The translations under genes were made by a program, and so were the position numbers. DNA of 64,000 nt, from NCBI RefSeq assembly GCF_020745735.1, contig NC_083443.1:19581006-19645005 (forward strand), given 5' to 3'. The stretch is from Hemiscyllium ocellatum (lineage: Eukaryota). Below are positions 417 through 52,324 of the stretch, piece after piece (within the stretch, counting starts at the first letter, position 1; each line of letters opens with the position of its first letter). The notes beneath the pieces were generated by a model. It saw only the letters and a program-made list of their open reading frames with translations, did not search any database and had not been told where the DNA came from.

Positions 417-894
417 TTGCTCTGTCCCAGTGGAAATGAAGATTCCTGTGCTGTACCAATAAGCTGCAATGCTTCCCTACTGTAACACCCCTATCCTCCA
501 CCCCTCTCCAGGGATGTCCTTATCCCCAATTGTTCTGATTCCCCATGTCCCCTATCCACTATACCTGAGTCTTTAATGTCCCAATCCCCTCAATGTCCCA
601 AAGCCCCAATACTCTGATTCCCCCAGCGAGCCACTCCCACAATTCCTTGTCCTCAATCTCTGCAATGCCTTTCTATTCTTTCCATTGCCCCTCAATCCCC
701 ACATTCCCTTCTCACTCTCCCAGTGCTGTCCCCAGCCGCAGTGTTGGATTTGACAGAGATGTTTGGCAGGGCAGAGAGAAAAACTGCAGATCAATACCTG
801 AAAACTGTTTCCTCCTGATCTCAACATCTGTCAGAACCACATTTGAAAAATGCAAGTTTCAAATTCCCATGTTTTCCACAAAAGATTTCAGAAT

Positions 895-1512
895 TCAAAG
901 TTTGTGAGAAGATTTGTAGCTCGGGTGCCCGTTGTTGTGGTTCTGTTCGCCAAGCTGGGAATTTGTGTTGCAGACATTTCGTCCCCTGTCTAGGTGACAT
1001 CCTCAGTGCTTGGGAGCGCTTCTGTGATGTTCCCTCTGGCATTTATAGTGATTTGTATCTGCCACTTCTGGTTGTCAGTTCCAGCTGTCTGCTGCAGTGG
1101 CCGGTATATTGGGTCCAGGTCGATGTGCTTATTGATTGAATTTGTGGATGAATGCCATGCCTCTAGGAATTCCCTGGCTGTTCTCTGTTTGGCTCGTCCT
1201 ATAATAGTAGTGTTGTGCCAGTCGAATTCATGTTGCTTGTCATCTGCGTGTGTGGCTACTAAGGGTAGTTGGTCGTGTCGTTTCGTGGCTAGTTGGTGTT
1301 CATGGATGTGGATCGTTAGCTGTCTTCCTGTTTGTCCTATGTAGTATTTTGTGCAGTCTTTGCATGGGATTTTGTACACTACATTGGTTTTGCTCATGCT
1401 GGGTATCGGGTCCTTCGTCCTGGTGAGTTGTTGTCTGAGAGTGGCTGTTGGTTTGTGTGCTGTTATGAGTCCTAGTGGTCGCAGTATTCTGGCTGTTAGT
1501 AGTCAAACTGAC
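895..1512 (-). mobile_element. Penelope-like element 3' portion (GIY-YIG endonuclease, hammerhead motif, tail), ending just past a fold-back apex
   Basis: ORF 990..1397(-) encodes VVYKIPCKDC..YIGQTGR..HEH..REFLEAWH..INK. Hammerhead motif at 970-1009(-). Same family and same apex as 17349-18540. Confidence 0.88.
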
Positions 1513-2150
1513 ACCCTTATACCCTCATTGCACCCTCACACTCCTCACTCTCCCTCACACCCTCACCCCTCCCTCAAACCCCTCACAAATCCCTCAGACC
1601 CTCACCCCTCCCTCAAACACCTCACACATCCCTCACACCTTCACCCATCCCTCGCACCCTCACCCAACCCTCACACCCTCATCCCTCCTTCACACCCCTC
1701 ACCACTCCCTCACACTCTCACCCCTCCCACATACCCACACCCCTCCCACTCATCCTTATCCCTCTCTCACACCCTCATCCCTCCCTTACAACCTTCACCC
1801 CTCCCTCACACCCCTCACACATCTCTCAGACCCTCACCTCTCCCTCAAACCCCTCACACATCCATCACACCCTCACCCCTCCCTCACACCCTCACCACTC
1901 CCTCACACTCTCACCCTTCCTCACATCCCTCACTCTTCCTTCACACCCTCACCCATTCATTGCACCCTCACTGCTCCCCCACACCCCTCACACCCTCACA
2001 CATCCCTCACACCCTCACCCATTTCTCACACCCTCACTGCTCCCTCACCCCCTTATCCCTCCCTCACACCCCTCACACATCCCTCACACCCTTGCCCCAC
2101 CCACACACCCTCACCCATTCCTCACACCCTCATTCCTTTCTCACACCCGT
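1513..2150. repeat. Degenerate C/A/T-rich tandem tract built from CCCTCA/CACAC units
   Basis: About 640 bp almost devoid of G on the + strand, with recurring CACACCCTCA units. Confidence 0.9.
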
Positions 2151-2434
2151 CACTTCTGCAGTTTTTTGTCTCTTCCTTCATTCCCAGTCACATCTCCCTG
2201 ACAGTCCTCCAAACCCACCCCTGCTTCGTCCCCTAAATGGTTTGTTGCAGTTATACAACAGCAAAGTCCCTTTAAAAGTGTCACTCTGTGTGAGAGTTTA
2301 TTAATGACCCCCTAGTCACTGTGGAATGATCCAATGATTCTGGAGCTGTCTGCCTTTTGTGTTGAGAGAAACACTGAAAACAGCGAGATGTGAAGGAAAG
2401 ACAGCATGGCACTTAATAGACCTCATAATACAAC

Positions 2435-2619
2435 TGAAAATGTGTTGCTGGTTAAAGCACAGCAGGTTAGGCAGCATCCAAGGAATAGGAAATTCGACGT
2501 TTCGGGCATAAGCCCTTCATCATTTTTCCTATTCCTTGGATGCTGCCTAACCTGCTGTGCTTTAACCAGCAACACATTTTCAACTGTGATCTCCAGCATC
2601 TGCAGACCTCATTTTTTAC
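2435..2619. mobile_element. Short fold-back Penelope terminal-repeat insertion (family A) with hammerhead motif on the - strand
   Basis: Inverted arms 2435-2492 and 2525-2582. TGATGAagggcttatgcccGAAACGTC on the - strand. 14-bp TSD CCTCATAATACAAC at 2421-2434 and 2620-2633. Confidence 0.85.
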
Positions 2620-5164
2620 CCTCATAATACAACACTGAGTTCAACAACTTCAGGGCAATGAACACTGTCCTCCATTTTGATTACAACATGTACACCCAAC
2701 CGTGTCTTGCTGCATGGGTCTCCTTTCAGCAGAAGTGACCAAGCTTCTACTCTTCATACCTATCATTAACATCTATTCTGCATCTGTATAACTCCTTTGC
2801 TACCATCAGCACTCGCTTTGCCTTTTGGTCTGGCACCTTTGCTGTCATTTCCACTTGACCTGCCTCTTCCTCATTAACAGCACTAAAACCATTATCTTGC
2901 AGATCCCTTTGCTTCCACAGAAGAGTAATATGAAATTTTAAAGACTATCGCTGTCTCTCTCTCTCTCTCTCTCTCTATAGTTGCTGCCAGACTTGCCAAA
3001 TTTCTCCCGCAGTTTCTGCTTCTATCTAAGCAGTCAAGAGAGATGGAAATGAAGATTGAGGAGCAAGGAGTAGAAAAAGCACTGAGGCAACACCATTCCC
3101 AATCTATACCTTCATTAATGATTCCCATGTATACTGTTTTAATCAGACACAGTCCACTCACTAACTGCATTACAAAAACTGACCCTGTTCCAAAGGGGTA
3201 GAACTTCATTTCATTCCCTTGCAATAAGATGCTGAACATCAGAATGAAGAATAGATCTATGTTAATATTAGAAGAAAGAATCTTCTAAATGAACATTTTG
3301 AAATGTTGTTGAAGATGGAAAATGTGTCTGTTGAAATTCAGCCTAAAAATTGAATCAATTATAGAGCTCACCAATTTTTATTCATTTTAAGGGAAAGTAC
3401 ACATCAGGGCTAACACATTTATTGCTGTAGCAGATATTTCACAGGAAACTGCATGGGGGAGAGATACCACCAACTAATTTCATAGGGACTTACTTAACAA
3501 TACATCTTGCTGTAAGAAAAAATCATATTCTAGATCATATTCAAGTCCCACTGGAAGCTGCATGCATTTCAATGTGTTTATTTGCTTCTCAGTTAAAAGG
3601 ACAGTGAAATGTCGCAGGCTGTGACAGCAGGTCTTTAGAGAATGTACACAGGACCTTTTAGCAGTTTGTAAAAGCCACAGATGCTTGGTTATGAATTCAA
3701 AGAAGAGTTTAATCTCTTGAGTTTTATTTTCACATTGCATAATTATCCTTAACAGCAATAGATTTAAAATATCCTTTGTCTGCGTCTACTTATCTAAAAT
3801 CAGGAGGAGGTGTTTCTATGAAGAAGGCCAGTTACATTTATATAGTGCCCACAGGACATGCCAAAGCACTTTACAAGCAAAGAAGTGCAAAGTCGTGACT
3901 GGAGTGATGTTAGAAATGTGACATCCAATTGGCACATAGCAAGATCCCACATCCTCCAATGTGATAACAACCAGATATTCTGAGTTCTTAAATAAAGCAA
4001 AGAATACATTGAACAACAGTGAGAATCAAATAATTTTGGCAAACTCGTTTGAAAGAGTCAGAGAAAGTGCTACACTTTCAAACTAAAGAAAAATTATGTA
4101 AAATAAAATGCAAAACTGGAAATTCTGGAAACAAAAACAGAAATTGCTGGAGGAGCTCAGCAGGTCTGGCAGCATCTGCGGAGAGAGAAAGTAGAGTCAA
4201 CGTTTCAACTCCAGTCACCCTTAAGCAAAGAAACAATTAGGTATTTTGTTCACACTCTGCTTTACACAGAGGAATTGATTCTCCAACAGTTCAAGAAGGC
4301 TGCCCTGCATCACCTTTCCCAGGACAATTAGGGATGGACAATAAATGCTGGATGCCCACATCCCATCAATTAATAAAAAAATCATTAACTTGTACAGTCT
4401 CCGTGCAACACCTCCGAAGGGTCCAGTTGCAAACCAATCAACACTCGCTTCCTATTCAGTATAAATGTTGCTTTCTGTTCTAGTTAGTATTTCTTTTGTA
4501 TTGTCCTAATGACTGCAAACTTTGACAAAATGTGTTTTTTACTCAACAATAATTCCATTTTCTCAATGGAATAGATTATGCATGAAAGTCTTTAGTTGTA
4601 GAATGACATTGTTACAGAAAAGAATACAACGTGGACTGTGTCTTCAAAATACCTTAGGATTGTTATAAATTAGCGAATAAAAAGAAAAGGCTGATTTATG
4701 AAGGGATGGAAACCATTAATCATGTTAATATGAAGAATGAGTATACTTCATAAGCATATTGGGGATACCAGCTGTCCTGCATATTACAGGTCAGTGCTGC
4801 ACTTCTGCACACATTTCCAGTCCTCATGTGTGCCTTATTCTGTTTCATCAAAACCATCTGTTGGGATTTGAGTCCTCATGTCAGCTCCATTTTGCCACAT
4901 CTCTGAGATGTCTGTATTAATTGCATGAAATCAGCACATATCATCTCACAGCAACCAGCCTTCATCTATTTAAACCACACATGGGAATGGCAATAAATTT
5001 CATGCTGAACCAAACACAATAAAAGCTAGGGCAAAGTGAAAAGATCATGCAAACAAAATGCAATAAACCGCTGTTGGTGCGAATCAGAAAATAAAATGAC
5101 CAGTCAGCAATAATGTAGAGGACACATGCATTAACCCATGCTGCTGGGAGCAGACCTGATAGCT

Positions 5165-5780
5165 GGTTTTTTTATGGGATGATAGAGTCACTGGCTAGGC
5201 CAGCATTTAAAGCCCATATCAAGTTGACCTAGTGAAGGTTGTAGTGAGGTGCTGCAGAGTGTATGATGTCCGATACATTCACAGTGTTGCTTGGGTGTAA
5301 TAGCAGGATCTTAAGCCAGCGATACGGAAGGAAAAGCGATATATTTCCAAGTCAAGATGGTGTGTGGCTTAAAGGGGAACTTGCAAAGAGTGGTATTCCC
5401 ACGTCTCTGCCACCTATAACTTTCTAGGTGATAACGGTGTGGATTTGGAAAGGGCTGTCAAAGTAAGTTGTTGGAGTGCGTCTTGTAGTTTGTGTTCACT
5501 ACAACAACTGTGTGTCAGTGATGAAGGGAGTGAATGTTAAAGGTGGATGGGATGCCAACCAAATGGTCTGCTGTATCCTGAATGGTTTAATACTTTCTGG
5601 GAGCTGCATTCATCCCCAGGTAAGTGGGGAGCAGTCCATCACACTCCTGACTTGTCCTTCTTTGGTGGTGGATAGCTTTGGGAAGTTAGTAGGGGAAGGT
5701 TAGTCAATTCTGAATTCTGAGCCTCTGACCTGCTCTTGTAGCCACAGTATTTTATACTGCTGCAGTTGAGTTTTCTTGTC
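5165..5780 (-). mobile_element. Decayed LINE 3' fragment sharing its tail with the SINEs at 6612 and 12988
   Basis: GGCTAGGCCAGCATTT..GCCCAT tail motif and downstream sequence recur at about 24870-25200, 57570-57990 and 61080-61420. Confidence 0.55.
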
Positions 5781-6611
5781 TCTGTACAGATGCTGCCGAA
5801 AAATTGGCCAATAGTTAAAACTCAAGCTGGTGATAACTCAGATGAATGTTTATGTTGCACTCATAAGCCTCTGACTGAAAACACACACTTATGTTAATTG
5901 TCTAACAATCAGGAAAGTCTTTCAGATGCCAACAGACATTTACAAGTGACAGCAGCAGTTTATTGCATTTCTGACATTTAGACTTGTGATGTGGACATTC
6001 CAATATGTCACGGACATGCACTGAGAAATGATTCAGTTAGATTGATAATCCGTAATCTGTTCATGTTTGCTGTTGCTGAAAAATCAGCTCTTCTCCAGAG
6101 AAACACATTCTAAAGTCGCCACCGTACCAACCCGCAATAACCCGGGGAAAGCAAATAAGCAAAACAAGAATGCAAAATTCTGAGCAGTTTGTGTCAGACA
6201 TGTTGTTGGAGTGGGTCTGACTCTCTCGGCGTGATTCAATCTATACACATATTCAGTGCCACTTTAACTAGTGCCAATTTTACAGCAGCAACGATTCTGC
6301 AGTTGGGCGATGGTGTTGTTTGGATGACATTTGCCTCCATTCCATAATCAGCTGAATATCCTCCAACGTATTCACTAACCAAGAGATCAAATTGACTCCT
6401 GCTGCTCTTCACACCTACACACAGATTCATACAAGCAATGGAGAAGGCGCACAATGAGAAAACAGGTAATCGGCTGTAGATAGTGGCTGCGACCTTTACT
6501 TTAATGCAGGGCTGCTGAAGGTGTTTTTGTTTCACATGAACCAAAGGCCCATCTACCCTCTCAGATAGACCTGAATGATCCCATCACACCATTAGAAGAA
6601 TAGTATGGGAG

Positions 6612-6970
6612 GTTTTTTTTCTATATTCATCCCAAGGGATGAGGGTACCATCAGCTAGGCAGCATTTATTGCCAATCCCTAATTAACCAGAGGGCAGTTC
6701 AGAGCCAATCATGTTGCTGTGGGTCTGGAGTCACATTTAGGCAGACTGGGTAAGGATGGCAGTTTCCTTCCCTCAAGTGCATTAGTGAACCAGATGGGTT
6801 TTTCCAGCAATCAACAATGACTTCATGGTCGTCATTCGATTCTTAATTCCAGGTTTCTTTTTTTTTATTGAATTCAAATTCCAACATCTGCCGAACTCAG
6901 GTCCCCAGAACATTCGCTGGGGCTCTGGATGAACTGTCCAGCAATAATAAGACTAGGCCATCACCTCGCC
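6612..6970 (-). mobile_element. tRNA-derived SINE inserted in an older Deu-domain-like SINE
   Basis: Collinear with a second copy at 12988-13327, with a tRNA-like head at the right end on the - strand. The flanks (about 6545-6611 and 6971-7120) resemble the SINE at 43575-44075. Confidence 0.65.
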
Positions 6971-8489
6971 CTAAACAAATCACCTTGTGATTTATTTCTC
7001 TGCTGTTGGAGCTGGCTGTGCACAAATTGGTTGATGAATTTCCCACAGTACACTGTTAATGACTCTTCAAAAAAAGGCACTCGATTAGCATCGACCATCC
7101 TTTGGCACTCTGGAGTTGTGAGAGTTGAGATGGAGCCAGACTTTAGAAAATGGGAGGGCCTATCAGAGCCCAGGCAGATCCTGTGGAGGGGAATTGATGC
7201 AGGTGAGAACGGGGTGTTGAGATTAATAGGACAGGAGAAGGGAAAACACAGAATTCGGAATATCTTGGGTTCGGAGCAGGCTTTCCACGTGTCACAAGGG
7301 TTCAGTTCCTCCTCTTTCTCAGGAATTAGTAAAGCTGAAGCAAGGGTAGGCATTAAGAATGATGATCCTGAAGGTAATTTGCAAAGCTGAGCTCCAAGCA
7401 TTTCTTTCCTTTTGTGACAATTATTCTTGATCATTTTTTAATTCTACAAGGATTAATCCTTGCATTTCTCTGAAAAGCAACAAGTTAATGTCCTGATTCT
7501 TTCCTTCTCCTAGTTTATTTTTAATATGCTCCGTCCTAATCAGGTTGCTAAATTAATTCCAACCAGTGCCAATTTTATTTCAGTATTGTAATCACTGAGC
7601 ATCATTTATCTGGGGAAGGGATGCCCTCTCATTGTCATTACAAAACTGTGATCATCATATTGGCTTCTTTCTTAAATCTGTAATTAGGAGTTGGCATAAA
7701 TCAATCACAACAGATCAACATGAAGACTTCTACTGGGACAGACGAGGTCACTTTTCCAGGTCAATTCTGCTTTTTCATAGTATTACATGTTTTTTTTTAA
7801 ATTCCCAATTTCTTCCTGATTTGTCTCCCTGAAGAAATTGCAAGCCTCCGTAAAAATACCAATGGAAGTAAAGTTAAAGGATATCCCTACCATTTGTAGT
7901 TCAGGGTTGGAAAATCAAGCCATAAGCCCTTGATCAGTACACATACTTTCTATTATTTATTAATTTTGTTGCTACATACTCAGAATATTCTGCACCATAT
8001 TCTTAACGATGGCAATTGTGTTAAATTAGTTATGTTGTTGTTGTCCCAATTCAGAGAAATTATTGGATCTAGCATTAGTGCAGAGCTTCTTTTCCCAGTT
8101 TCCACTGTTTCCCTCTCTCACATCAACACTTTGTGGAGGGACAAATTTTCAACTTGCTACTGACTGATTTAAATGGATAGGAAATGTGGCCATTCCCATA
8201 ATGTCCTCTGCACTGGTAATATCAGTTTTATATTGAATAATAAGTTGAGAATGACCCCACGTTGATATTTTCTCACCAACTTGCTCAAAGATGTTATTAC
8301 ATACTTGGCCTCTTGGCTCAGAGATAGGGATAATACCACTGTACCACAAGAGACTGATTGTCTCATGTCTTCCTGCATTATGTAGTGTGCTAATTTACAT
8401 TCATTGCCAATGGAAACCAGATTATCTTTTCCGAATATCAAGTAAAATGCAAAAATGGATAGTCAGTTGTTCAGAACTATTCCCAGTGA

Positions 8490-8980
8490 TGAAGAGAGGT
8501 TTAAGGTGCAGAGTAGGTTTACCAGAATTACAGGCTATGAGCTATCGGAGAGAGTAGAAAAACTCAGTTGGTTTTCTCTGGAGCAGCAGAGGCTAGGGGA
8601 TGACTTGATAAAAGTCTATAAAATTATGAGATGTATGGCTAGGGTTGACAGTCAGAATCTTTAGCCCCGAGTTGAAATATCTAATACTAGAGGGCATGCA
8701 ATTAAGGTGAGAGGGGGAAAGTTCAAAGGAGATGTGAGGGGCAAGTTTATTTTACACAGCAAGTGGTAGGGGTCTGGAATGTGCTGCCAGGGGTGATGAT
8801 GGAGGTAAATAGGATAGGGGCCTTTAAGTGGCTTTTAGTTAAGCACATGAATATGGAAGGAATGGAGGGAAATGGATGAAGGACAGACAGAAGGGATTAG
8901 TTTAATTTAGCATCATGTTCAGTACAACATCACAGGCCGAAGGGGCCGTTCCTGTGCTGTACTGTTCTATATTCTATGAT
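8490..8980 (+). mobile_element. CR1/HER1-type LINE 3' fragment
   Basis: RT C-terminal FSLEQQRLGDDLIKVYKIMR and a 3' tail GGCCGAAGG..CCTGTGCTGTACTGTTCTAT. Confidence 0.85.
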
Positions 8981-9582
8981 GGAAGGTGATTAGCCAAGAA
9001 ACAGGCCCTGCTTTAACCCATCGCCCAGTGGGACAACTTATATCCATGTGGCAGCCCATCCCAAACTTCCCAAAGTCATGTTAACAGGTTGGATTACTGC
9101 AGCTCCCACATCAGGGGAAGCCAAGCAATTATCACGTTGAGTCAGACGTAGCTCAAAACAAAGTTGTTACCATTGCAAAAGTCTGCAGGATGAAAGATCA
9201 AAATTGCTGTTTTCTTTGACCTAGCAATGTAATTGAACAGTGAGTCTAAAGCAAGTGTAAATTGTAAATCCTGTTTCTTTGGCACATCGGCATTTCTGTT
9301 GATGAAGAAATGCGTGTTACCTGCAGATTTAACTACAAGGGAGCTACTGCAGAAAGAAAACTCTGGACTTAGACAAAAGCAATTACGATTTGATTTGCCC
9401 ACGGGGACCAGAACGCAGTTCACAGAAATCCCATCCTGTGAGTGATTTGAGAATGTGAGATGATTTAATTCTCACTTCACATCACAGTGCCGGTAGATTT
9501 AACTTGGAACCATTATGGTTTACTTTATATCTGTGTTAGCGTCAAACCAAAGTCCTTGAAAATCTTTCTCGAGGTCATATGG

Positions 9583-9927
9583 AAGGAGAAAGTGAGGACT
9601 GCAGATGCTGGAGGTCAGAGTTGAGAGGGTAATGCTTGAAAAGTACAGCAGGTCAGGCAGCATCCGAGGAATAGGAGAATCAACGTTCTGGGTATAAGCC
9701 CTTCATCAGGAATTCTGATGAAGGGCTTATACCCAGAACGTTGATTCTCCTATTCCTCGGATGCTGTCTGACCTGCTGTGCTTTTCCAGCACCACACTCT
9801 CAACTCAATGTCATATGGGAGAAAGTGAGGATTGCAGATGCTGGCGATCAGAGCTGAAAGTGTGTGAAGAAGGGCTCAGGCCCGAAACATCGACTCTCCT
9901 GTTCCTTAGATACTGCCTGACCTGCTG
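9583..9927. mobile_element. Two adjacent family-A Penelope terminal-repeat insertions (9583-9803 fold-back; 9819-9927 rearranged)
   Basis: 92-bp inverted arms at 9618-9709 and 9715-9806, centred on CTTCATCAG gaatt CTGATGAAG. The target sequence is present three times (9568, 9804, 9928). Confidence 0.85.
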
Positions 9928-10458
9928 CTCAATGTCATATGGACTTTGTTGAAAGGTCGTTGACCTGAAACATTATCTTATTTCTCTCTTTCTGTCTGTC
10001 TCTCTGAGACATTTATTTTCAGAATCCAAAGAACAAAAAGAATGATGATGCCCATTCTTATCAAACTCCAAATAGTGTGCAGCCAACAATCAATAGGATT
10101 CATGTAAAACTGTATTAGAGATTAGTGCGCACCAGAAAAGAAATGTTAATGTTAAGAATATATTAAAAATATTCAAAATGGTGTTCAACAATAAAGAAAC
10201 ACCACAAAAAGATTGAGACTCATTAAAGGGGTAGGGATGGTAATGTGATGCTAATCCCCACTTCTCACAATATCAGATCAGAGACCCAGTTGAGTACAAT
10301 GCAACACAATGCAGTCAGACAGTGTGAAGGACGTTAATAGCCTGTGTTCAAACTGTGTGAATGACTCATTCATTAAACTTTGAGTGGTATTGAAGGGTGG
10401 GGGGGGGTCTCCTGTCATTTGACTGGAGTATTGCAGCTGGAAGGGGATCTCTGACTTG

Positions 10459-10785
10459 GGGGGGCGGCACAGTGACTCAGTGGTAAGCGCTGCTACCTCA
10501 CAGCACCAGGGACCCAGGGTCAAATCCTGCCTTGGACGACTGTCTGTGTGGAGTTTGCATGTTTTCCCAGTATCTACATGGGTTTCCTCCAGGTGCTCTG
10601 GTTTCCTCCCACAATCCAAAGATGTGCGGTCAGGTGAATTGGCCATGCTAAATTGCCCATCGTGTAGGTTATTAGTCAGGGATGAATGTAAGGGAATGGG
10701 TCTGGGTGGGTTACTCTTCAAAGGGTTGGTGTGGACTTGTAGGTCTGAAGGGCTTGTTTCCACACTGTAGGGAATCTAATTAATT
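10459..10785 (+). mobile_element. HE1-type V-SINE
   Basis: tRNA-like head GGCGGCACAGTGACTCAGTGG, V-domain CTGTGTGGAGTTTGCATGTT..., CR1-like tail with (AATCT) end. Confidence 0.88.
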
Positions 10786-11361
10786 TTAAAAAAAGACTCT
10801 TTCATTCGCAGCCAGTTCAGGTCTTTACGGCTAACAGACCTAAACGCTAGCTTTACTTCAGTGCTGAATACGTGGGATGCCAACGCCCCATTATACCCAG
10901 TAGTTAATCAACCACGGCTGCTAAAGTCAAATTCTCAATTTCATCTCATTTTCTGTGCGCAAATAATTTCCTGGAGTAAGGATCTTACAGTGTTTCCAAT
11001 TCATTATCATTTTTATTTTCCTCATCCTTCAGGTTTTTGGGTCCTCAAATTTCACAAAGGGCGGAATCCAAGGCACCTGAGACCTGGGTGAACATCAGGA
11101 CCAACAATCCATCTCCTCAACCAACAAGATTTACACAGTGAGATGGCACCAAAGCAAGATAGAGAAGAAAATGAGGTGAATTAGACTCAAACCAGAGCAG
11201 GGAGAGATATTAAAAGTAGTAAATAAATATTGGATCAAGAGAAGTTGACGAGGGATCAAAAGGAAAAGTAAGAAGTAATTTTTACAGTTATTTTATCATT
11301 CAGAAAGAAATCTCTACAAGCAATTTACAACCTGTATAAGTGAGTCTCTACACACATCTAA

Positions 11362-11597
11362 ATAAAAACTGAAAGAACTGCAGATGCTGTAAATCAGAAT
11401 CAAAAATAGAAGCTGCTGGAAATACTCAACAAGTCTGGCAGCATCTGTGGACAGAAATCAGAGTTAACATTATGGATTGAGTGACCCTTCCTCAGAACTG
11501 CTCTGAGAAATGTTAACCCAAAACGTTAACTCTGATTTCTCTCCACAGATGCTGCCAGACCTGCTCAGCTTTTCCAGCAATTTCCACTTTTGTCTCG
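11362..11597. mobile_element. Older fold-back Penelope-type terminal repeat (family D)
   Basis: Inverted arms TCTGGCAGCATCTGTGG..GAGTTAAC and GTTAACTC..CCACAGATGCTGCCAGA, with a decayed CTGAnGA..GAAACGTT motif. Related pieces lie at about 4120-4222, 21280-21375, 24600-24730, 35712-36050 and 53830-53990. Confidence 0.65.
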
Positions 11598-12066
11598 ACA
11601 TTTATCACCTCCCATACAAGTGTTCTAAAGATCTTAACCACCAGTAGTACATTTTTTTTGAGTTCAATGTTGTTTGCTTGGGAAAGTGAGCAATATCTTG
11701 AAACTAACAAGAAATTTGTCAGTATTTTATGAGGCCAACACCAGAGTGGAGCGAATCAATGTGAAATTTGTGGCGATTTGTCACTCCAGTAATATCTCTT
11801 CCTCACAGCAATTTGCAGGGTTATTTACACATGGATAACAATTCATATAATAAATTCATTGTAATTTTCCTAGTACATTCTGGCCTTATTTTAACAATTA
11901 CTGTGGTCAGTACTCTGTATTGTTTGTTTCACTCGAGAACAGGAACATAAAGACAGGATGAGTTTTAATATATTAAACACCATTCTCTTCTGATACCATC
12001 TCTACGCTTAGAGACTGCTCATTTTACCAACCCAATGTAAAATACTTGAAAGTTTGAAAGATCTTT

Positions 12067-12376
12067 GGGCGGCACGGTGGCACAGTGGTTAGTACTGCTG
12101 CCTCACAGCGCCAGGGACCTGGGTTCAATTCCCGCCTCAGGCGACTGTGTGGAGTTTGCACGTTCTCCCCGTGTCTGCGTGGGTTTCCTCCGGGTGCTCC
12201 GGTTTCCTCCCACAGTCCAAAGATGTGCGGGTCAGGTGAATTGGCCATGCTAAATTGCCCGTAGTGTTAGGTAAGGGGTATATGTAGGGGTATGGGTGGG
12301 TTGCGCTTCGGCGGGTCGGTGTGGACTTGTTGGGCCAAACGGCCTGTTTCCACACTGTAAGTAACCTAATCTAATC
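12067..12376 (+). mobile_element. HE1-type V-SINE, young full-length copy
   Basis: A box TGGCACAGTGG, B box GGTTCAATTCC, V-domain, CpG-rich tail and (CTAAT)n end. Nearly identical to 25844-26156. Confidence 0.92.
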
Positions 12377-12987
12377 CTGAGGTAACAGCACCTCCAGCAC
12401 ATGTTGAGAAATAGAGGCTAAAATTTTGATCTGTGAATATCTTATGAAACCAAGGGACAGTATGGAATTGCATAGAGTTATTAATTATTTTATTTGTTTT
12501 ATTTCCTCTAATTTGGGTCCTGGGATTATACTTTTTTACAATCCCTCATTTAGCAAAATTGTTAAACAGAGCTATCAATGTCGCGTCTCTGACCTACGAG
12601 TGCAAATCTTTTCTGATTTCCTCCTGAGCTTCAGGATTGACAATTCCAACATCCTTCTGCCTCCTCCCAATTCCGTCTGCTGCATTCAAGGTTGGTTGCA
12701 CTTCAACAATACTCTAAAGCTGGATAAAGCCATCTGGTGGTGATAAAGACCACATCCTCAACGAACAGGTCTGACATTTTCAATAAACATTTGAAATGAG
12801 CTTCAGTGGGTCACCTGACAATTGCTGTCAAAGAGGTCACAAACCTTCAGATGGTGTTGGAACTATAACTAGTGGAAAATTTAACGAACTTCAAACAAAA
12901 GGTAGATCAGAATGGAGGGACAACATTCAAATGTAGGTACGCGTAGTAAGAGAGGTGTACAGTCGACACGTGTGAGGTAAGGAAGAA

Positions 12988-13327
12988 ATTTTTTAAAATC
13001 GATGAACAGGATGTGGGGAACACTGGCTAGGCCAACATTTATTGCCCATCCCTAACTGCGCAGAGAGCAGTTAAGAGTCAACCACATTGCTGTGGGTCTG
13101 AAGTCATATGTGGGCCAGACCAGGTAAGGATGGGAGTTTCCTTCCCTAAAGGACATCAGTGAACCAGATGGATTGTCTCCCAACCATATTAGAAGTCATT
13201 AGACTCTTAATTCTAGATTTTTAAAATTGGGTTCACGTTCCACCATCTGTCATGGCAGGATTCAAACCCGAGCCCCCAGAACATTACCTGGCTCTCTAGA
13301 TTAATAGTCTATCTCCATGCCATCCCA
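12988..13327 (-). mobile_element. tRNA-derived SINE (same family as 6612-6970)
   Basis: B box GGTTTGAATCC on the - strand near 13258-13269. Collinear with 6612-6970. Confidence 0.7.
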
Positions 13328-13481
13328 CAAGACAATGTGTATGAAATGTTTCTGAATGCCGAATGTGAGGATGCAGCTGAAGTTATTACTAAAAAGGTCT
13401 GACATCATAGAAGAACATGTAGTTAAAAAAAAACTATCTGCATATTATAACATGTTAAAATATTTTCTATATAAAACATTG

Positions 13482-16400
13482 GATGGAATTTTATGGGATA
13501 TGGAGAGATGTGTGGCAAATTGTACAAGGAGCCCATCACTGTGACAGGAGCATCTTGGTCCATTTTTTATGCTTTTAACAAGTGAAGCAGCAAGTTTCCT
13601 CCAGAGGCAGCAGTGAGTTGCCAATTAAGGGGGATTATTGTTTGTTAAATGCCCAACGCACCTCACTGTTAAACTTGTCAAACAAGTTAGATGTCGGGAA
13701 AACCCAACACGGAAACCAGAGTAGGTACATGGCGAACTTTGCTTGTTGCCTACCCTTCCAAGGCATATTCCAAAATAATTACCATGGTAACACTCCAACA
13801 CACTGGCAGGGCACTCTGGGAGCACGGGTTTCCATTGCAGGACACATCAATAACTGGTATTGGAAGACTGTAGCAGGGACACATTGTATACATGGTCAGA
13901 GACCCAGCTCATGGATTTGACCAGGCTGCATCTCAGCTTCTTGCTTGCTCTGTTAGTGCCCTCTCACTCACACCACCCATGCTTTACATTGCCTTGCTCA
14001 TTACTTTGCCAATTAGCACAGCCACACACACCTAGGCAGCATGTCTTGCTGTACAGCTGTCCTCAGTCACGTGGGCGTGCATCTTTCTGAACAGCAGTGT
14101 GTTATGTCAATCTCACATCTGTAACATGCACTGACAACTTACACAGTTGTGTCTCAATGTCTTAGGGAGGTATCCCTCACCCAAGTCCACATAGGCACCA
14201 ATCCGTCAGCTGTTGTTGGAGGATCAGGGTCCTAGATGTCTCTGCAGCACCCATTATTCTCTGTACACCTTGTTCCTTGTGTTTCCAGATGATGTAGCAA
14301 GCTCTCAGCTCCTCCTCCATCCATGGGACATGCCGTGTGGCCATGAATGTATTTTTCCCACAGGATCAAGGACATTTGGGGTGACCCAGGTAGATAAGCA
14401 TCCAGACGTAAGACAATGACACTTACAAAAGTGTGAAAATACAATATACTACTTTGACACCCATGACATCAATGTGCCCTCAATAAATTTCCTTCTTCCT
14501 CTCCCTCCCATTATGTACTACAGGGTTCTCCAGCTGAGGTGATGCCAAACCATTGGCAGTCCCCGGTGTGGGCTGGGGATGGGGGGGAGGGGTGTCCAAA
14601 CTGGGCCTCAGGCCAGATTCCAGTTAATCCTCCATCCTCCCCAATGTAAACGTCCAAACATCGGAAAAAGGCAACAAGTTGGAGTTGGAGGGCTCGGCCA
14701 TCTCTGGAGTGTCCTGAGAGGGATGGTTCCTCCTCCAGCTCGGTGCCCTTTGGCACTGCCCTGCCTCCTACTGAGGAAGGGGCGCCTAGAGTTTGCACCA
14801 GGTTCCCCATCCACCTGCCACCATTCCCTGGTCCTGAGGACCAGTAGCTAAGGTGTCGAAATGTAGGTGCACCTCTGCACCAGACCCTGTGGTTGCTGGA
14901 CCTGTGTCTCCATGGCACTGCCAACCTGTTCATGGAGACAGCCAGTGCACTACTGGCCAATGAGGGGCATTGCATACCAGATGCCTGTCTGCTGCTCCTG
15001 CTCATCCCTGTGCGTGTGGATGAAGTCCCTCATTGCCAATCCCTCTCCTGCCTGGGGCTGGGCAGGTGCCTGGTCTCCAACAGTGTTACGAATGCCAGGG
15101 GCCTGGGGAGTTTGTTCCTCACCCAGCCTCACTTGCACAGTGAGCTCCTCACCAGACTGTTCTCCCAAACTGTCTCAGCCTGACTGAGCTGCCTGTACCT
15201 AATCTGGTAGCGGGTATAGGAGACAGCCTTGTTATTGATAACTCGAAGCTCAACTCTCTCATCCTCAGATGTGGAGGAGATGGTTTCTGGGGAGAGGTAG
15301 TGGAGATATTGGCAATACATGCAAGAAACAAAAGATAAAAGATAACACAGCAAGTAATTAGAAATGGCATGCAATCAGTGAGACTGACAGTAAGGTTACT
15401 GGGTGATTGAGAGCAACGGCGCTGACTCTGTTGGTGGGACATAGACGTCTCACAGGACCAGCCCTGGAAGCCTCCAGTGAGGGACAGGTGTCTACTGACA
15501 CCAATGATAGAATGATAAATGCTGCTCGCCTCCATTCTTTCAGCCCACACACATAAAATGTAAAGCAGATTTATTAGATATGATACAATTCGATTCCCTA
15601 CAATGTGGAAATAGGCCATTCGGCCCATCAAGTCTACACCGACCTTCCAAAGAGTAACCCAACTCCCTACATTTATCCTTGACTCATGCACCTAACATTA
15701 TGGGCAATTGAGAATGGCCAATTCACCTGATCTGCACATCTTTGGATTGAGGGAGGAAACTGGAGCACCCAGAAGAAACCCACGCAGACACGGGGAGAAT
15801 GTGCAATCTCCACACAGACAGTCACCCAAGGCTGGAATTGAACCCAGGTTCCTGGTGCTGTGAGGCAGCAGGGCTAACCACAGAGCCACCATACCACCCT
15901 ATTTTTTATCTTATTAACTTCTACTTTATTAGTATTTTTTCATTTCAATCTACATTGTCTTTTTGTTTTACATTTTTAGGTGTTTAACAATCCTTATTTC
16001 AATTTAATTCAGTGATTTCGCTGTGACTGTTCGTACTTCTGTGAGTCAGCAAACACAGCTTTCTCTCCCTGTATGGGGTGAGGAGTCTATTGGCGGGCTC
16101 ACTCTGCCCCTGGTTTTTGCTGTTTTCTCCCGGAATGAGAGAAAAGGAGGGATTGAGTCAGTTAGAAGGAGGTGTTGGTGTAGGTGGGAGAAAGAGGGTG
16201 AGGTGCCCTGTAGAGTGAGGAAACAGCACAGAGGGCCTGCAGAGTTAGCGATGTCGGGGGTTGGTGTGGGTGACAGTGAGTGAGGGAAGACAGTGAATGC
16301 ATCAGTGAGAGTGGCACAGCATGAGTCTTGGTAGCTGATGGGTGCAATAGCAGTGATAGAGTGAGTCTGAGGTAGCCTAGAGAGATAGGGAGAGAGAGAG

Positions 16401-16923
16401 AGAGAGAGAAAGCGAGGGAGAGCGACACTGAACTTTGCAGAGCAGTAAGGGTCATTACTTTTCTAATGATACTATTGACTAGTCCTCTGCATCCTGGAGT
16501 TGGCATTAACTCAGACCAAGGTGGCAGAGTCTGATGGCATGCGCTCCCCCAGGAAGAGTACACCCCTCCTTTGCAATTACCCAGTTCACTAGGAATTTCA
16601 GGCTCGTGATGCCATCTTCCCATTCTCCAACATCTTGGATTCTGTCCGATAACAAACAGGGTGATTTCAAACTGAGTGCCTTTGTGCACAGTGACCTTTT
16701 AAAGATGGCACGGCCACAGGTAATTTCTAGGATATCCGTTGAGTGTTGAGTTGTTCCGAGAATAAGGTGTTTTAAAGATGGGATTAGAATCTGAAGACAG
16801 GATAGGTAGTTAATGAGGTGAGTTTGGTAAAATATTTGAGAAAACTCATGACCTCACAATGGGAATCCTTCTAAAAACCCAGATGCATCTGGGACTCGTC
16901 TGAAAAAACATAAGACTCAGCCC
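13482..16923 (-). mobile_element. Decayed PIF/Harbinger-like DNA transposon remnant with a fossil Myb/SANT-like gene
   Basis: The - strand near 16430-16540 gives, across frameshifts, PPWSE..NANSRMQRTSQQYH*KSNDL, resembling the trihelix W..RT..QC.KK.NDL. Degenerate terminal inverted ends GGATGGAATTTTATG and CATAAGACTCAGCCC. Locally GC-richer. No transposase core recognised. Confidence 0.45.
15570..15899 (-). mobile_element. HE1-type V-SINE
   Basis: Reverse complement of the 12067-type head, V-domain and tail. Confidence 0.88.
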
Positions 16924-17405
16924 ATGGTTAAATTTATGATAGATTTGTGAAAAAGGGGAGAACTGGAAAGTTTAACAAAGTCATCAACAAACTGGTCAAA
17001 TAACAGTTCTGATTTGTCTAACAAATGATCATATTCAAATCAAATCATTCCTTGAAAAAGATGCATGGAGGGATGTTTTTTACAAGGGGACGTTGAATAG
17101 ATTTAGACCTGCACTCATTGGAACTTGGAAGCAGGAGAGGAGACCTTACTGAAACATGGAGGATAAAGATTGCCTCCCACACTAGGGCCAGAGAGCATCA
17201 TATCAGAATAAGGACTGACCTATGTAAGACAGAAATAAGAAGGACTTTCTCCTCTCAGATGGTGATGAACCTGAGGAAATCTTTACCAGGAAGAGCTGTG
17301 AAAACTGGGTTGTTCAAAGTTTATTTAAGACTGAGATAGATATGTTTCGGTTGTGGTTCTGTTCACCGAGCTGGGAATTTGTGTTGCAGACATTTCGTCC
17401 CCTGT

Positions 17406-17825
17406 CTAGGTGACATCCTCAGTGCTTGGGAGCCTCCTGTGAAGCGCTTCTGTGATGTTTCCTTCAGCATTTATAGTGATTTGTATCTGCCACTTCCGGT
17501 TGTCAGTTCCAGCTGTCTGCTGCAGTGGCCGGTATATTGGGTCCAGATCGATGTGCTTATTGATTGAATCTGTGGATGAATACCATGCCTCTAGGAATTC
17601 CCTGGCTGTTCTCTGTTTGACCTGTCCTATAATACTAGTGTTTTCCCAGTCAAACTCATGTTGCTTGTCATCTGAGTGTGTGGCTACTAAGGATAGCTGG
17701 TCGTGTCGTTTTGTGGCTAGTTGGTGTTCATGGATGCGGATCGTTAGCTGTCTTCCTGTTTGTCCTATGTAGTGTTTTGCGCAGCCCTTGCATGGGATTT
17801 TGTACACTACATTGGTTTTGCTCAT
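17406..17825 (-). CDS. Penelope GIY-YIG endonuclease frame, left arm (139 aa from an internal Met; expression unknown)
   Basis: Mirror copy of 18038-18445 with a 4-aa insertion near the C-terminus, uninterrupted. Confidence 0.55.
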   Translation of the reverse strand: MSKTNVVYKIPCKGCAKHYIGQTGRQLTIRIHEHQLATKRHDQLSLVATHSDDKQHEFDWENTSIIGQVKQRTAREFLEAWYSSTDSINKHIDLDPIYRPLQQTAGTDNRKWQIQITINAEGNITEALHRRLPSTEDVT

Positions 17826-18037
17826 GCTGGGTATCGGGTCCTTCGTCCTGGTGAGTTGTTGTCTGAGAGTGGCTGTTGGTTTGTGTGCTGTTATGAGTCC
17901 TAGTGGTCGCAGTAGTCTGGCTGTTAGTAGTCGAACTGACGGCCAGACTACTGCGACCACTAGGACTCATAACAGCACACAAACCAACAGCCACTCTCAG
18001 ACAACAACTCACCAGGACGAAGGACCCGATACCCAGC

Positions 18038-18445
18038 ATGAGCAAAACCAATGTAGTGTACAAAATCCCATGCAAGGGCTGCACAAAACACTACATAGGA
18101 CAAACAGGAAGACAGCTAACGATCCGCATCCACGAACACCAACTAGCCACGAAACGACACGACCAGCTATCCTTAGTAGCCACACACTCAGATGACAAGC
18201 AACATGAGTTCGACTGGGCCAACACTACTATTATAGGACAAGCCAAACAGAGAACAGCCAAGGAATTCCTAGAGGCATGGCACTCATCCACAGATTCAAT
18301 CAATAAGCACATCAACCTGGACCCAATATATCGGCCACTGCAGCAGACAGCTGAAACTGACAACCGGAAGTGGCAGATACAAATCACTATAAATGCCGGA
18401 GGAAACATCACAGAAGCGCTCCCAAGCACTGAGGATGTCACCTAG
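18038..18445 (+). CDS. Penelope GIY-YIG endonuclease frame, right arm (135 aa from an internal Met; expression unknown)
   Basis: MSKTNVVYKIPCKGCTKHYIGQTGRQLTIRIHEHQ...KEFLEAWH...INKH, uninterrupted. Confidence 0.55.
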   Translation: MSKTNVVYKIPCKGCTKHYIGQTGRQLTIRIHEHQLATKRHDQLSLVATHSDDKQHEFDWANTTIIGQAKQRTAKEFLEAWHSSTDSINKHINLDPIYRPLQQTAETDNRKWQIQITINAGGNITEALPSTEDVT

Positions 18446-18465
18446 ACAGGGGACGAAATGTCTGC
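18426..18465 (+). ncRNA. Minimal type I hammerhead ribozyme motif (mirror copy at 17386-17425 on the - strand)
   Basis: GCA CTGAGGA t GTCaCCT agac AGGgGAC GAAA TGTC TGC: core boxes, stem II and a 3-bp stem I are present, and stem III reads ATGT instead of ACGT. Confidence 0.7.
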
Positions 18466-18721
18466 AACACAAATTCCCAGCTCGGTGAACAGAACCACAA
18501 CAACGAGCACCCGAGCTACAAATCTTCTCACAAACTTTGAAGACATATTTCTAATCAGTAAGGAAATCAGAAGTTGTAGGGATAAAACAGGAACATGGAG
18601 TTAGGGATTATCAGGTCGGTCATGATTACATTGAACGGTGAAACAGATTGGATGGGCCAAATAGCCTCTTTATCCTCCTACATGTTAAGGTAGTAACCAT
18701 AGATCCTAGCTGTGTTCAAGA

Positions 18722-18857
18722 AGGCAAAAGCGAGATTAGAAACGAGAGTGTGGTGCTGGAAAAGCACAGCAGATCAAGAGCTTTTGCCCAAAACATCGAC
18801 TCTCCTGCTCCTCAGATGCTGCCTGACCTGCTAAGCTTTGCCAGCACCACACTCTCG
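18722..18857. mobile_element. Short family-A fold-back insertion
   Basis: Inverted ends GAGAGTGTGGTGCTGG and CCAGCACCACACTCTC. 13-bp TSD GCTGTGTTCAAGA at 18709-18721 and 18858-18870. Confidence 0.8.
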
Positions 18858-19143
18858 GCTGTGTTCAAGAGCGACCGAGCTACCACATCAACTAATGCAA
18901 TCACAACGTGTCCAAAAGATTATGTCATATATACATTCCTCTATAAGGTGAAAGCGTAAAATGCCCATTTTGAAAGGCGCTGACATGATGGGGGCTCACA
19001 TTTTCCAAACAGCTAGCAGTAAAATTTTAAATTGAAACATTATATGTTGGAAATACTGAGCAGGTCAGGGACCATCTGTGGAAAGGCAGAGATTAAATGT
19101 ATAAAACATCCTTGAAATGTCACAGGTCGGAAATACTTGCACT

Positions 19144-37333: not shown

Positions 37334-37790
37334 GTTTAGTGGCTAGCTGGTGTTTGTGGATGCAGATTGCCAGTTGTCTGCCACTGCACAGTGTTATGTG
37401 CAGTTTTTGCATGAATCTTGCAAATTATGTTAGCCACTAAACACCACGACTAGCTGCCCCTAGTAGCCACACAAACAGATGACAAGGGCCACATATTTGA
37501 CTGGGACAACACAACGATCATAGGACAAGCCAACCATAGGACAGTCATAGAATTTCTAGAAGCATGGCACTCATCCACAGACTCAATCAACAAACACATT
37601 GACCTTGACCCCATATAGCAGCCACTATACCGAACAACCAGAACTGCAGCCAAAAACAGAAATGCATCCAAATAAATTCCAGAAAACACAATACTGTAGG
37701 AAGCTCCAAAACACTGAAGATGTCACCTAGACAGGGGACGAAACGCCTGCAAATCAACTTCCCAGCTCAGCGAACATACCCACAACTATG
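37334..37790 (+). mobile_element. Penelope-like 3' fragment with a 5' inverted segment and hammerhead motif
   Basis: 37431-37790 is homologous to 18145-18500 (EFLEAWHSSTDSINKHIDLDP). 37334-37430 is upstream endonuclease sequence in reverse orientation. CTGAAGA..GAAACGCC at about 37713-37748. Confidence 0.8.
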
Positions 37791-51113: not shown

Positions 51114-51725
51114 TCATTGGAACCAATTCTGGAAAACGTCCCTGTTCTCTTAAGAAACTGAACTCAGAGCAATCACCAGAAGCTTGGAATAAATTTCAAC
51201 ACAGTCAAAGTTTTGAGCAATAGCCTAAGGTTATCTTAGGCCTATACATTATAATGGATACTACAGACATGTAGATCCAGAGCTGTTCCCGACACAACAA
51301 GGGTAATGCACAGAATCACATTATTACAATGCAGAAGAAAGCTATTCAGCACACTATGTACGCACCATCTCTCTGAATGAGCTTCATGACTTAGAGTCAT
51401 CCTTACACTTTTGATCCATAATCCTATACATTACTTATAATTAAATAATCATCTTCAAAGTCCTTCTGAAAGATTCAATTGAACCTATCTCCATGTCACA
51501 ACTGGGCAGTGCATTCCAGACCAGAACCACATTTGTTTTCACATATATGATGATGTGGTCACTTTAAAGAGGTTATTTGGCCCTTGGTTTGTTTTTGAAG
51601 AGAGATCATCATGGCAGAGATGCTGCAGGGCCTAGTTTAACAATGCAAAGGGAGTGGCCAGTTCTCCCAGTTCTGGATTTTTCTAGTTTGCTTTTAGCTG
51701 TAGCAGTCACAAGGTATGAGAGTCC

Positions 51726-52324
51726 GTTGTTGTGGTTCTGTTCGCCGAGCTGGAAGTTTTTGCTGCAAACGTTTCGTTCCCTGGCTAGGGAACATCATCA
51801 GTGCGGTGGGAGCCTCGTGTGAAGCGCTGCTTTGATGTTTCTTCCGGTATTTATATTGGTTTGTTCTTGCCGCTTCCGGGTGTCAGTTTCAGCTGCAGTG
51901 ATTTGTATCTGGGGTCCAGGTCGGTGTGTCTGTTGATGGATGTTCTTGCCATTTCCGGGTGTCAGTTTCAGTTGTAGTGGTTTGTATATGGTGTCCAGGT
52001 CAATGTGTCTATTGACCTGGACACCATATACAAACCACTACAACTGAAACTGACACCCGGAAACGGCAAGAACATCCATCAACAGACACACCGACCTGGA
52101 CCCCAGATACAAATCACTGCAGCTGAAACTGACACCCGGAAGCGGCAAGAACAAACCAATATAAATACCGGAAGAAACATCAAAGCAGCGCTTCACACGA
52201 GGCTCCCACCGCACTGATGATGTTCCCTAGCCAGGGAACGAAACGTTTGCAGCAAAAACTTCCAGCTCGGCGAACAGAACCACAACAATGGATACCCGAG
52301 CTACAAATCTTCAATCAGATTTTA
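51726..52324. mobile_element. Young, near-perfect fold-back Penelope-like insertion (282-bp arms, 6-nt loop, 32-nt tail)
   Basis: Arms 51723-52004 and 52011-52292 with no indels and loop GTGTCT. Perfect 11-bp TSD TATGAGAGTCC at 51715-51725 and 52325-52335. Confidence 0.93.
52211..52250 (+). ncRNA. Intact minimal type I hammerhead ribozyme motif (mirror at 51765-51804 on the - strand)
   Basis: GCA CTGATGA t GTTCCCT agcc AGGGAAC GAAA CGTT TGC: all core boxes, 7-bp stem II, palindromic ACGT stem III and 3-bp stem I. Confidence 0.82.

Follow-up and report, generated by a model that had tools for sequence, protein, structure and literature searches.

A fold-back joint shared by two truncated Penelope-like copies, probably by-products of an abundant autonomous family

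In the window analyzed here (the whole 64,000-nt stretch of Hemiscyllium ocellatum DNA), the 3' region of a Penelope-like element lies at two loci ~16 kb apart (16.4 kb), once as a single arm (copy 1) and once as a fold-back palindrome (copy 2), and other fold-backs are found further along (Table 1). Copy 2 comprises a GIY-YIG end, a hammerhead-like motif, and a 40-nt tail confined to one arm, and copy 1 contains the linker end, the GIY-YIG region, a hammerhead-like motif, and the 40-nt tail (894-933). An earlier note on this DNA had placed the palindrome at 17349-18540 and the separate copy at 895-1512, with the same apex in both; these structures are present, with the coordinates off by one base.

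Table 1. Features of the two Penelope-like copies and of the other fold-backs in the window
Feature	Position	Strand	Remarks
Copy 1 arm	894-1500	-	Antisense on the forward strand; 3' ~0.6 kb of the Penelope-like element
Apex remnant, copy 1	1501-1512	.	Loop AGTCAA + ACTGAC (first 6 nt of the missing opposite arm)
Minisatellite	1513-2225	.	Period 19-20 nt, CCCTCAC-rich; beside the inner end of copy 1
Candidate left TSD, copy 2	17338-17348	+	AGATATGTTTC; 9/11 positions match 18541-18551
Copy 2	17350-18541		Head-to-head repeat of the terminal ~0.6 kb of the Penelope-like element
Left arm, copy 2	17350-17928	-	Antisense on the forward strand; tail-less; ancestral 12 nt kept at 17434-17445
Filler AGTC, 4 nt	17929-17932	.	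Turn of copy 2; unlike the native continuation of either arm
Right arm, copy 2	17933-18541	+	Sense; native from the GAA codon of ...ISE/LTARLL; without the 12 nt
Hammerhead-like core	18429-18462		Right arm of copy 2
40-nt tail	18502-18541		Right arm of copy 2
Candidate right TSD, copy 2	18541-18551	+	AGACATATTTC
Fold-back	~37334-37786		Apex differs from that of copy 2
Fold-back palindrome, 52-kb	51723-52292		99% arms, 6-nt loop, TSD 11/11, tail on one arm

The complementary arms of copy 2 (17350-17928 and 17935-18541) are separated by 6 nt, and their complementarity is 96% across 486 nt and 100% in the outer 84 nt. Between the left and right arms, 20 sites differ and there is a 12-nt indel; as the earlier note had it, the 12 nt are missing from the two tail-bearing arms (i.e., copy 1 and the right arm) and kept in the tail-less one. 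The ORFs of the copy 2 arms and of copy 1 end in ...EALPSTEDVT and ...EALHRRLPSTEDVT, again as described there, that of the right arm ending at 18445. The inner end of the left arm is ACTAAC and that of the right arm ACTGAC, and the left arm stops at its outer end 1-3 nt from the usual tail-less terminus of the family (loose ends at 18502, 136 contigs). Each outer junction is covered by zero-difference contigs, and extension of the palindrome into the flanks was looked for and not found. The 9/11 match between the candidate TSDs was equaled by 124 of 2,000 shuffles (p ~0.06) and is suggestive only.

In copy 1, which lacks the 12 nt, the frame stays open for 135 aa from M; sequence identity with the right arm of copy 2 is 95.6%. 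Its layout corresponds roughly to the left arm, the loop, and the initial 6 nt of the right arm. This collinearity with the tail-less arm bears out the observation that the apex reading follows the tail-bearing arm in copy 1 and the tail-less arm in copy 2. The apex remnant abuts the minisatellite directly, and a search for a TSD around copy 1 found none.

The coding sequence in the arms corresponds to the C-terminal part of RT + GIY-YIG proteins, with 7,375 homologues. Because none of the three arm ORFs had a Pfam match at E up to 0.01, domain identity was drawn from long homologues (P0043, P0045, and P0079), in which RVT_1 lies upstream and GIY-YIG covers the aligned part. On this protein similarity, copies 1 and 2 are classified as derived fragments of an EN+ Penelope-like element (Penelope/Poseidon type). 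No RT-coding piece was detected anywhere in the 64-kb window, in agreement with the earlier description of the copies as RT-less, and both loci are 5'-truncated at the linker preceding GIY-YIG and are therefore non-autonomous fragments. Read depth is 1-6 in the flanks and up to ~9,300 in the arms, where it declines 3'-to-5', as is typical of 5'-truncated retroelements; the parent family, which is autonomous, numbers thousands of copies. The hammerhead-like motif of copy 2 reads CUGAGGA...GACGAAAUGUC and that of the 52-kb palindrome CUGAUGA...GAACGAAAC, and Rfam returned no hammerhead match in the whole window at the gathering score or in 18300-18600 at E up to 10.

Penelope-like elements typically have a 5'-truncated copy next to them in inverted orientation, and a tail of 30-40 bp that is restricted to one end (PMC8557442, PMC3846280). 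An RT start site lies on either side of the tail, and cleavage and extension by the enzyme affect both strands (PMC11167929); palindromic inverted junctions have been interpreted as self-priming (PMC3846280). In the family studied here, 3' termini fall at 18502 in 136 contigs versus 18541 in 289, and the outer ends of copy 2 are these two usual termini, 40 nt apart. The arms of the 52-kb palindrome likewise have one canonical 3' end class each (18502-type and 18541-type). Given two alternative 3' termini family-wide, the tail is an optional start-site product that labels no arm, and the inversion of the apex relative to the tail, which had been offered as evidence of a flip, loses its force.

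The window contains exactly two occurrences of the 22-nt apex (1491-1512 and 17919-17940), against 0.01 matches in shuffled sequence with up to 3 mismatches allowed, and the apex of the 52-kb palindrome is again unlike it. The 22-nt apex is an imperfect palindrome (GGCTGTTAGT / AGTCGA / ACTGACGGCC), central within the integrated element in copy 2 and not at the terminus of a molecule. Nearly all parent-family copies run straight through this point, the native sequence continuing at 17933 in 2,122 and 2,132 reads (~2,100 per run) and in 44 and 22 contigs. The native read-through encodes ATLPYI(K/R)(N/S)IS, in agreement with proteins P0001, P0002, and P0011, and shark proteins continue beyond the apex point as ...PYIKNIS/ELTARLL; the native letters just before 17933, as taken from loose read ends, are ...CATCTCT or ...CATTTCT. 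The apex is a genuine fold-back joint that is absent from the autonomous consensus. A comparison of the N-terminus of the apex read-through with protein databases matched only three native Chiloscyllium punctatum proteins and no apex ORF, a metagenome scan for the apex gave 0 matches, and a back-calculation from bin depths, too imprecise to support a count, would put the reads bridging the apex at a few hundred at most.

More specifically, the joint is compound, in that both arms are cut within 5 nt of one coordinate and a 4-nt filler, AGTC, is added. Since this combination is found at two loci with unrelated flanks, the joint was most likely copied rather than made twice, in line with the earlier argument that independent inversions would not share it. 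A role of the 6-bp apex stub as a stable self-primer hairpin is not supported, as 36-nt strands ending in the stub are predicted to fold no better than shuffles (z +0.09 to -0.79).

The 40-nt tail and the absence of the 12 nt are common to copy 1 and the right arm, with the left arm opposite on both, and copy 1 agrees with the left arm in the apex reading and in an A at column 34. HRRL is retained in the outgroup and the proteins, which makes the 12-nt deletion the derived state; the deletion is a ~10% allele among family reads, a figure that allows for reads being placed on the best-fitting arm. It is the sole marker truly at odds with the apex reading, and template switching or a local repair copy accounts for it as well as a flip does. 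Substitutions among the three arms form a near-star tree (20-28 differences per pair) with no excess sharing seen between copy 1 and the right arm, and five minority states common to all three arms indicate their shared ancestry. Sites at which the left arm differs from the right are concentrated in the middle third (P ~0.02). Arm-arm gene conversion was considered for this clustering and rejected, because copy 1 shows equal unevenness against either arm, which makes the pattern uninformative on exchange.

We consider copies 1 and 2, both of them old, to be more likely than not ordinary fold-back by-products of a very abundant autonomous Penelope/Poseidon-type retrotransposon and not a separate palindromic mobile element. 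For how the cDNA turned and how the joint came to be copied, we infer the following course of events. Copy 2 would be one old head-to-head insertion, in which reverse transcription began at one of the canonical 3' start sites, the growing cDNA folded back near the E codon of ...ISE/LTARLL with addition of the 4-nt filler, and closure of the product left one arm ending at the tail terminus and its partner at the tail-less one. Copy 1 would be a one-armed member of the same sub-lineage whose last 12-22 nt came from an apex-bearing template, so that the joint would be identical by descent.

Two routes to copy 1, which we weigh about equally, can be envisaged. An apex-bearing transcript may have been reverse-transcribed in trans, with synthesis ending 6 nt beyond the turn (route a), or a break at the inner end of an ordinary neighboring copy, beside the minisatellite, may have been repaired from the left arm, 16 kb off in direct orientation, with synthesis running 12 nt past the homology before end-joining (route b). 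The 12-nt deletion would under route b be part of copy 1's own body. Neither route would require a flip of the center, the tail being chosen anew at each priming; indeed, copy 1 and the left arm lie on the same strand with the same apex reading, so no inversion is needed if the left arm was the primed one. Against the by-product reading, copy 1 shares its deletion with the right arm and its apex with the left, for which route a needs recombination or a flip; self-copied arms are born identical, so the 12-nt difference between them needs a later event or two templates; and two apex loci within 16 kb are unlikely for dispersed retrotransposition unless there are hundreds of copies. Hundreds of apex-bearing copies, if present, would favor a mobile palindromic family.

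That the palindrome is itself a heritable, RT-less, non-autonomous Penelope derivative, mobilized in trans and existing as flip and flop isomers produced by transcription or copying of either strand or by arm recombination, appears unlikely to us, although several observations speak for it. Two loci whose flanks are unrelated and whose exact 3' ends are independent have the non-native compound joint in common. Copy 1 is not derivable from the present copy 2, since its tail is on the ACTAAC arm, and copying by way of RNA would have required a third template bearing the apex, if not more. In addition, copy 1 goes with the right arm in the derived deletion and the tail but with the left in the apex. 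The symmetric structure gives both strands an identical 3' end, and both would thus end in the same recognizable 3' region and could be copied; pLTR sequences suffice for trans-mobilization (PMC3846280), and the proximity of the two loci would be unremarkable among hundreds of copies. However, the known loci are two only, within the 64-kb window, nearly all family reads continue natively at the apex, the three apex words sampled are listed in no indexed run, though this is no evidence that the apex is absent, and no apex read-through ORF appears among shark proteins. The tail is not an arm marker (PMC11167929; family termini), and the outer ends of copy 2 are both canonical, whereas a palindromic RNA copied with 5' truncation would hit the tail-less terminus only by coincidence. 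The near-star tree without extra sharing between copy 1 and the right arm also argues against such an element, as does the want of any sign of arm-arm exchange, the uneven differences being alike in all three pairs. The fuller proposal, in which a fold-back Penelope 3' fragment turned into a heritable RT-less palindrome that is copied off either strand and has flip/flop centers at many loci, we hold to be quite unlikely.

It is very unlikely that the joint arose twice at a hot spot where local sequence steers the cDNA turn and templates the same filler. The heptamer GACTACT does occur at the turn and again 15 nt deeper in the arm, and on the right-to-left strand the filler and first arm bases make up GACTACT, which pairs with AGTAGTC in the predicted fold. 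Among the read joints of a related species is another inverted one, its antisense side stopping at 17924 and thus 4 nt away from the apex, and a short inverted repeat of natural origin marks the turn of the young 52-kb palindrome. Yet two breakpoints, a 4-nt filler, and the G-to-A asymmetry (ACTAAC versus ACTGAC) would all have to be repeated, both events would have to hit one ~10% sub-lineage and lie within 16 kb, and read depth shows no drop that would indicate frequent termination, most copies running on. An assembly artefact at the center of copy 2 (two separate copies chimerically joined, or a fold-back read) is highly improbable. A 66-nt probe over the center, sampled as three words, is listed in no indexed run, those of the source organism included, and no listed contig spans the center; however, just three words were sampled and short-read assemblies frequently lose palindrome centers. 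The 20 differing sites and 12-nt indel between the arms do not fit a self-folded read, both outer junctions are confirmed by contigs, and the filler and stub recur at copy 1. Finally, the spacing of 16.4 kb and the direct orientation of copy 1 and the left arm would suit a local segmental duplication of one ancestral palindrome with later loss of one arm, an explanation that is extremely improbable: a check of the flanks within +-4 kb found dispersed repeats only and no homology, the outer end of copy 1 is the exact tail terminus that is missing from the collinear left arm, and copy 1 lacks the 12 nt present there.

The locus bears on how Penelope-like elements build tandem and inverted structures (PMC8557442, PMC11167929). 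That both fold-back arms end at canonical start sites fits ends set by the priming/cleavage sites of the element and not by random truncation. In addition, the turn of a fold-back can bear a short filler and an asymmetric mismatch, and a fold-back joint can be copied to another place. If many loci with both orientations did exist, they would represent the first palindromic non-autonomous Penelope derivative and a natural case of strand-symmetric retrotransposition.

Flip/flop terminal hairpins are known from parvovirus-type linear replicons. Copy 2 resembles them in being an imperfect palindrome whose unpaired center can, with respect to the remainder, be read either way round. It differs in that its apex lies inside an integrated retroelement fragment rather than at the end of a replicon, in having neither a nicking or hairpin-transfer function nor a pool of molecules representing the two orientations, and in that no stability is predicted for the stub hairpin. 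Animal retrozymes and hammerhead mini-elements (bioRxiv 10.64898/2026.07.22.740005; PMC4209133) are similarly RT-less, derived from Penelope 3' ends, and dependent on an autonomous family, but they are, as far as those accounts describe them, multi-copy tandem or short units, in contrast to two known loci with 0.6 kb of coding sequence kept.

The closest likeness is to head-to-head EN+ Penelope insertions (Evgen'ev & Arkhipova 2005; Arkhipova 2006; PMC3846280; PMC8557442), with which copy 2 shares inverted 5'-truncated 3' ends, a short palindromic junction, a tail on one arm only, a very abundant parent family, a GIY-YIG end with a hammerhead-like motif in the 3' region, and a ~11-bp TSD (clear in the 52-kb copy; 9/11 in copy 2). 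Unlike those insertions as described, the same junction is also found here as a 12-nt stub at a second, nearby locus, of which the published descriptions make no mention (PMC3846280; PMC8557442). The report on the Anolis Poseidon element PAc (PMC11167929), which leaves aside how two ends join in a fold-back, describes two alternative RT start sites and two-strand cleavage/extension; comparably, the family 3' ends studied here, known from sequence alone, form two classes 40 nt apart (18502 and 18541). As the evidence stands, the locus is a well-characterized example of known Penelope behavior.

We analyzed two neighboring loci, a fold-back in which two arms meet head to head (copy 2) and a single arm ending in a remnant of the same turning point (copy 1); both are 5'-truncated copies that retain the 3' end of a Penelope-like element, in a bamboo-shark-like genome. 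The right-arm frame of copy 2, searched against the full protein library, returned 7,375 homologues, the closest of which are "uncharacterized proteins" of Chiloscyllium punctatum (82-89% identical), and the long homologues carry a reverse-transcriptase (RT) domain upstream and a weak GIY-YIG match over the part aligned with the arm. No RT-coding piece was found in the window. The hammerhead-like motif was unrecognised by Rfam and is therefore termed a motif only. The earlier note's description of the copies, the 40-nt terminal extension (tail), the 12-nt difference, and the 22-nt turning point (apex) proved accurate within one base. The outer junctions of copy 2 were confirmed, and independent reads gave no confirmation of its centre.

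Coordinates and properties of the Penelope-like fold-backs and associated features in the window
Feature	Coordinates	Orientation	Properties
Copy 2	17350-18541		inverted repeat, ~0.6 kb per arm, 6 nt separating the arms
Left arm, copy 2	17350-17928	antisense	40-nt extension absent; 12 additional nt at 17434-17445
Right arm, copy 2	17935-18541	sense (+)	codes for ...LTARLLRPLGLITAHKPTATLRQQLTRTKDPIPSMSKTNVVYKIPCKGCTKHYIGQTGR..., terminating ...EALPSTEDVT; then a hammerhead-like CUGAGGA...GACGAAAUGUC motif and the 40-nt extension
Copy 1	894-1512	antisense on +	third arm copy; extension present, 12 nt absent
Minisatellite	1513-2225		CCCTCAC-rich, 19-20-nt period, immediately adjoining copy 1 at its inner end
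Older, asymmetric head-to-head Penelope fragment	37334-37786		short antisense piece (~135-221, arm coordinates) plus sense piece (~210-567)
Young Penelope fold-back, related (~75% identical) family	51715-52335		arms 51723-52004 and 52011-52292, 99% complementary; 6-nt loop GTGTCT on a natural TCAA..TTGA inverted repeat; 79-nt internal tandem duplication in both arms; tail in right arm only; perfect 11-bp target duplication TATGAGAGTCC; canonical CUGAUGA...GAAAC core

Raw Illumina reads of a related species (two runs) and contigs from two species were placed on 17100-18800. Raw-read depth was 1-6 in the flanks and up to about 9,300 in the arms; within the arms it dropped steadily away from the 3' end and was about 5,000 close to the apex coordinate. 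These depths indicate thousands of copies in the parent family, most of them native past the apex; those bearing the apex must be a small minority.

Close homologues read ...PYI(K/R)(N/S)ISELTARLLRPLGL... across the apex coordinate. In 2,122 and 2,132 reads, and likewise in 44 and 22 contigs, the match to the right arm persists as far as 17933 and gives way to letters coding ATLPYI..IS, so the native homology of the right arm reaches 17933 (the GAA codon). The left arm's native homology extends to 17928, and the four letters between these limits, AGTC (the filler), are foreign to both arms. This native run-on places the apex outside the family consensus and removes the possibility, named in the earlier note as contrary to its proposal, that the apex is ordinary element sequence. 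The joint is compound, with both arms cut no more than 5 nt from the same coordinate, a 4-nt filler, and inner ends that read ACTAAC versus ACTGAC. Copy 1, whose inner end repeats the 22 letters at the centre of copy 2, carries the whole joint, including the ACTGAC of the arm that it lacks. Since two independent origins of such a joint are very unlikely, we conclude that it was copied.

The flanks of the two loci show no homology within ±4 kb, the palindrome does not extend into the flanks of copy 2, and the tail ends of both loci terminate at the same base. Given the unrelated flanks and the shared tail terminus, a segmental duplication is excluded, and the local duplication considered in the earlier note does not account for the pair. 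Nor can copy 1 have been retro-copied from copy 2 in its present form: the ACTAAC arm is tailed in copy 1, whereas in copy 2 that arm, the left one, has no tail. The loci lie 16.4 kb apart, a spacing that is very improbable for a few dispersed copies in a multi-gigabase genome and that points either to a local process or to apex-bearing copies in the hundreds. The left arm has direct orientation relative to copy 1 and the same apex reading, and no target duplication was found at copy 1. Penelope-like elements reportedly favour microsatellite targets (PMC8557442); alternatively, the minisatellite immediately beyond the apex letters of copy 1 may mark a fragile site where this copy was broken.

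The earlier note had used the tail and the 12-nt deletion as markers for orienting the apex. In contigs of the source species, homology is lost at 18502 (n = 136) and 18541 (n = 289), so the 3' ends of the family usually lie at one of two positions separated by 40 nt. These correspond to the outer ends of copy 2 (18501 for the left arm and 18541 for the right), and the palindrome at 51723-52292 has the same pattern, with one arm tailed and the other ending ...CCACAACAACGG. Both palindromes match published Penelope-like elements, in which the enzyme nicks and extends both strands and the tail, lying between two RT start sites, is optional and present at one end only (PMC11167929, PMC8557442, PMC3846280). 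An optional tail with two start sites is no arm label across generations.

The 12 nt are kept (HRRL) in the outgroup palindrome and in the proteins, and the deletion is thus derived. When reads were assigned to the best-fitting arm, about 9,000 went to the left arm and had no listed deletion, and the 12 nt were present in 397 of 1,415 right-arm reads; these arm-placed reads put the deletion frequency at about 10% in the family. The deletion is a true derived character that copy 1 has in common with the right arm, and no other such character conflicts with the apex. Over 566 columns, copy 1 differs from the left and right arms at 28 and 26 positions, respectively, and the two arms differ from each other at 20. 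With substitutions polarised by the majority letter in the reads, five minority states are common to all three arms, making them one sub-lineage; three are common to the left and right arms only, the A of ACTAAC is common to copy 1 and the left arm, and copy 1 and the right arm have none in common except the 12-nt indel. The tree of the three arms is nearly star-shaped. Differences cluster in the middle third in all three pairs, so this clustering is no evidence of arm-arm exchange.

Two routes for copying the joint fit the data. An apex-bearing transcript could have been mobilised in trans, with synthesis halting a few bases past the turn; the discordant indel would then need recombination or a flip. 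Under DNA repair, a broken ordinary neighbor copy would have primed on the left arm, copied 12 nt past the point where homology ends, and been closed by end-joining. This second route needs no flip to account for the closeness and orientation of the loci, the lack of a target duplication, or the discordant indel. The earlier note's proposal of a heritable palindromic element with flip/flop isomers is supported only insofar as the joint was copied once; such a family is hypothetical, and a flip is unnecessary.

As for the turn itself, the symmetric arms and 6-nt gap of copy 2 and of the 52-kb palindrome would fit self-priming of cDNA, a mechanism already put forward for the palindromic inverted junctions seen in Penelope elements (PMC3846280). 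On the minus strand of copy 2 (17929-17950), which runs from right to left arm, the filler and first arm bases form GACTACT, and the same heptamer recurs 15 nt further into the arm. This repeat hints at a templated switch at the turn, and an initial turn-back that was aborted may have left the filler as a templated insertion. The apex stub hairpin was not stable by folding prediction. In addition, other inverted joints close to this element coordinate occur in contigs of organism B, a related species: one links 17924 to 18208 through the filler CACT, and another links 17619 to 17933, the two sides being separated by 8 native letters. cDNA may frequently end or switch near 17924/17933.

In organism B, a 609-nt contig follows the left flank over 17100-17344 (12 differences in 245) and then has ~176 nt unlike the palindrome. 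It may represent an empty site at the copy 2 locus, in which case copy 2 would be about as old as the species split. Separately, a very high-copy short repeat at 18732-18863, 2430-2587, and 9618-9806 (raw-read depth ~7,500) forms hairpin-like inverted pairs, with an opposite-strand joint at 18776/18799 in hundreds of reads; this repeat is probably of SINE type and likewise present in fold-back form.

Head-to-head Penelope palindromes within the window have three different apices, and the breakpoint of the older, asymmetric fragment is unlike those of the two symmetric ones. The architecture of copy 2 is that of known Penelope fold-back insertions.
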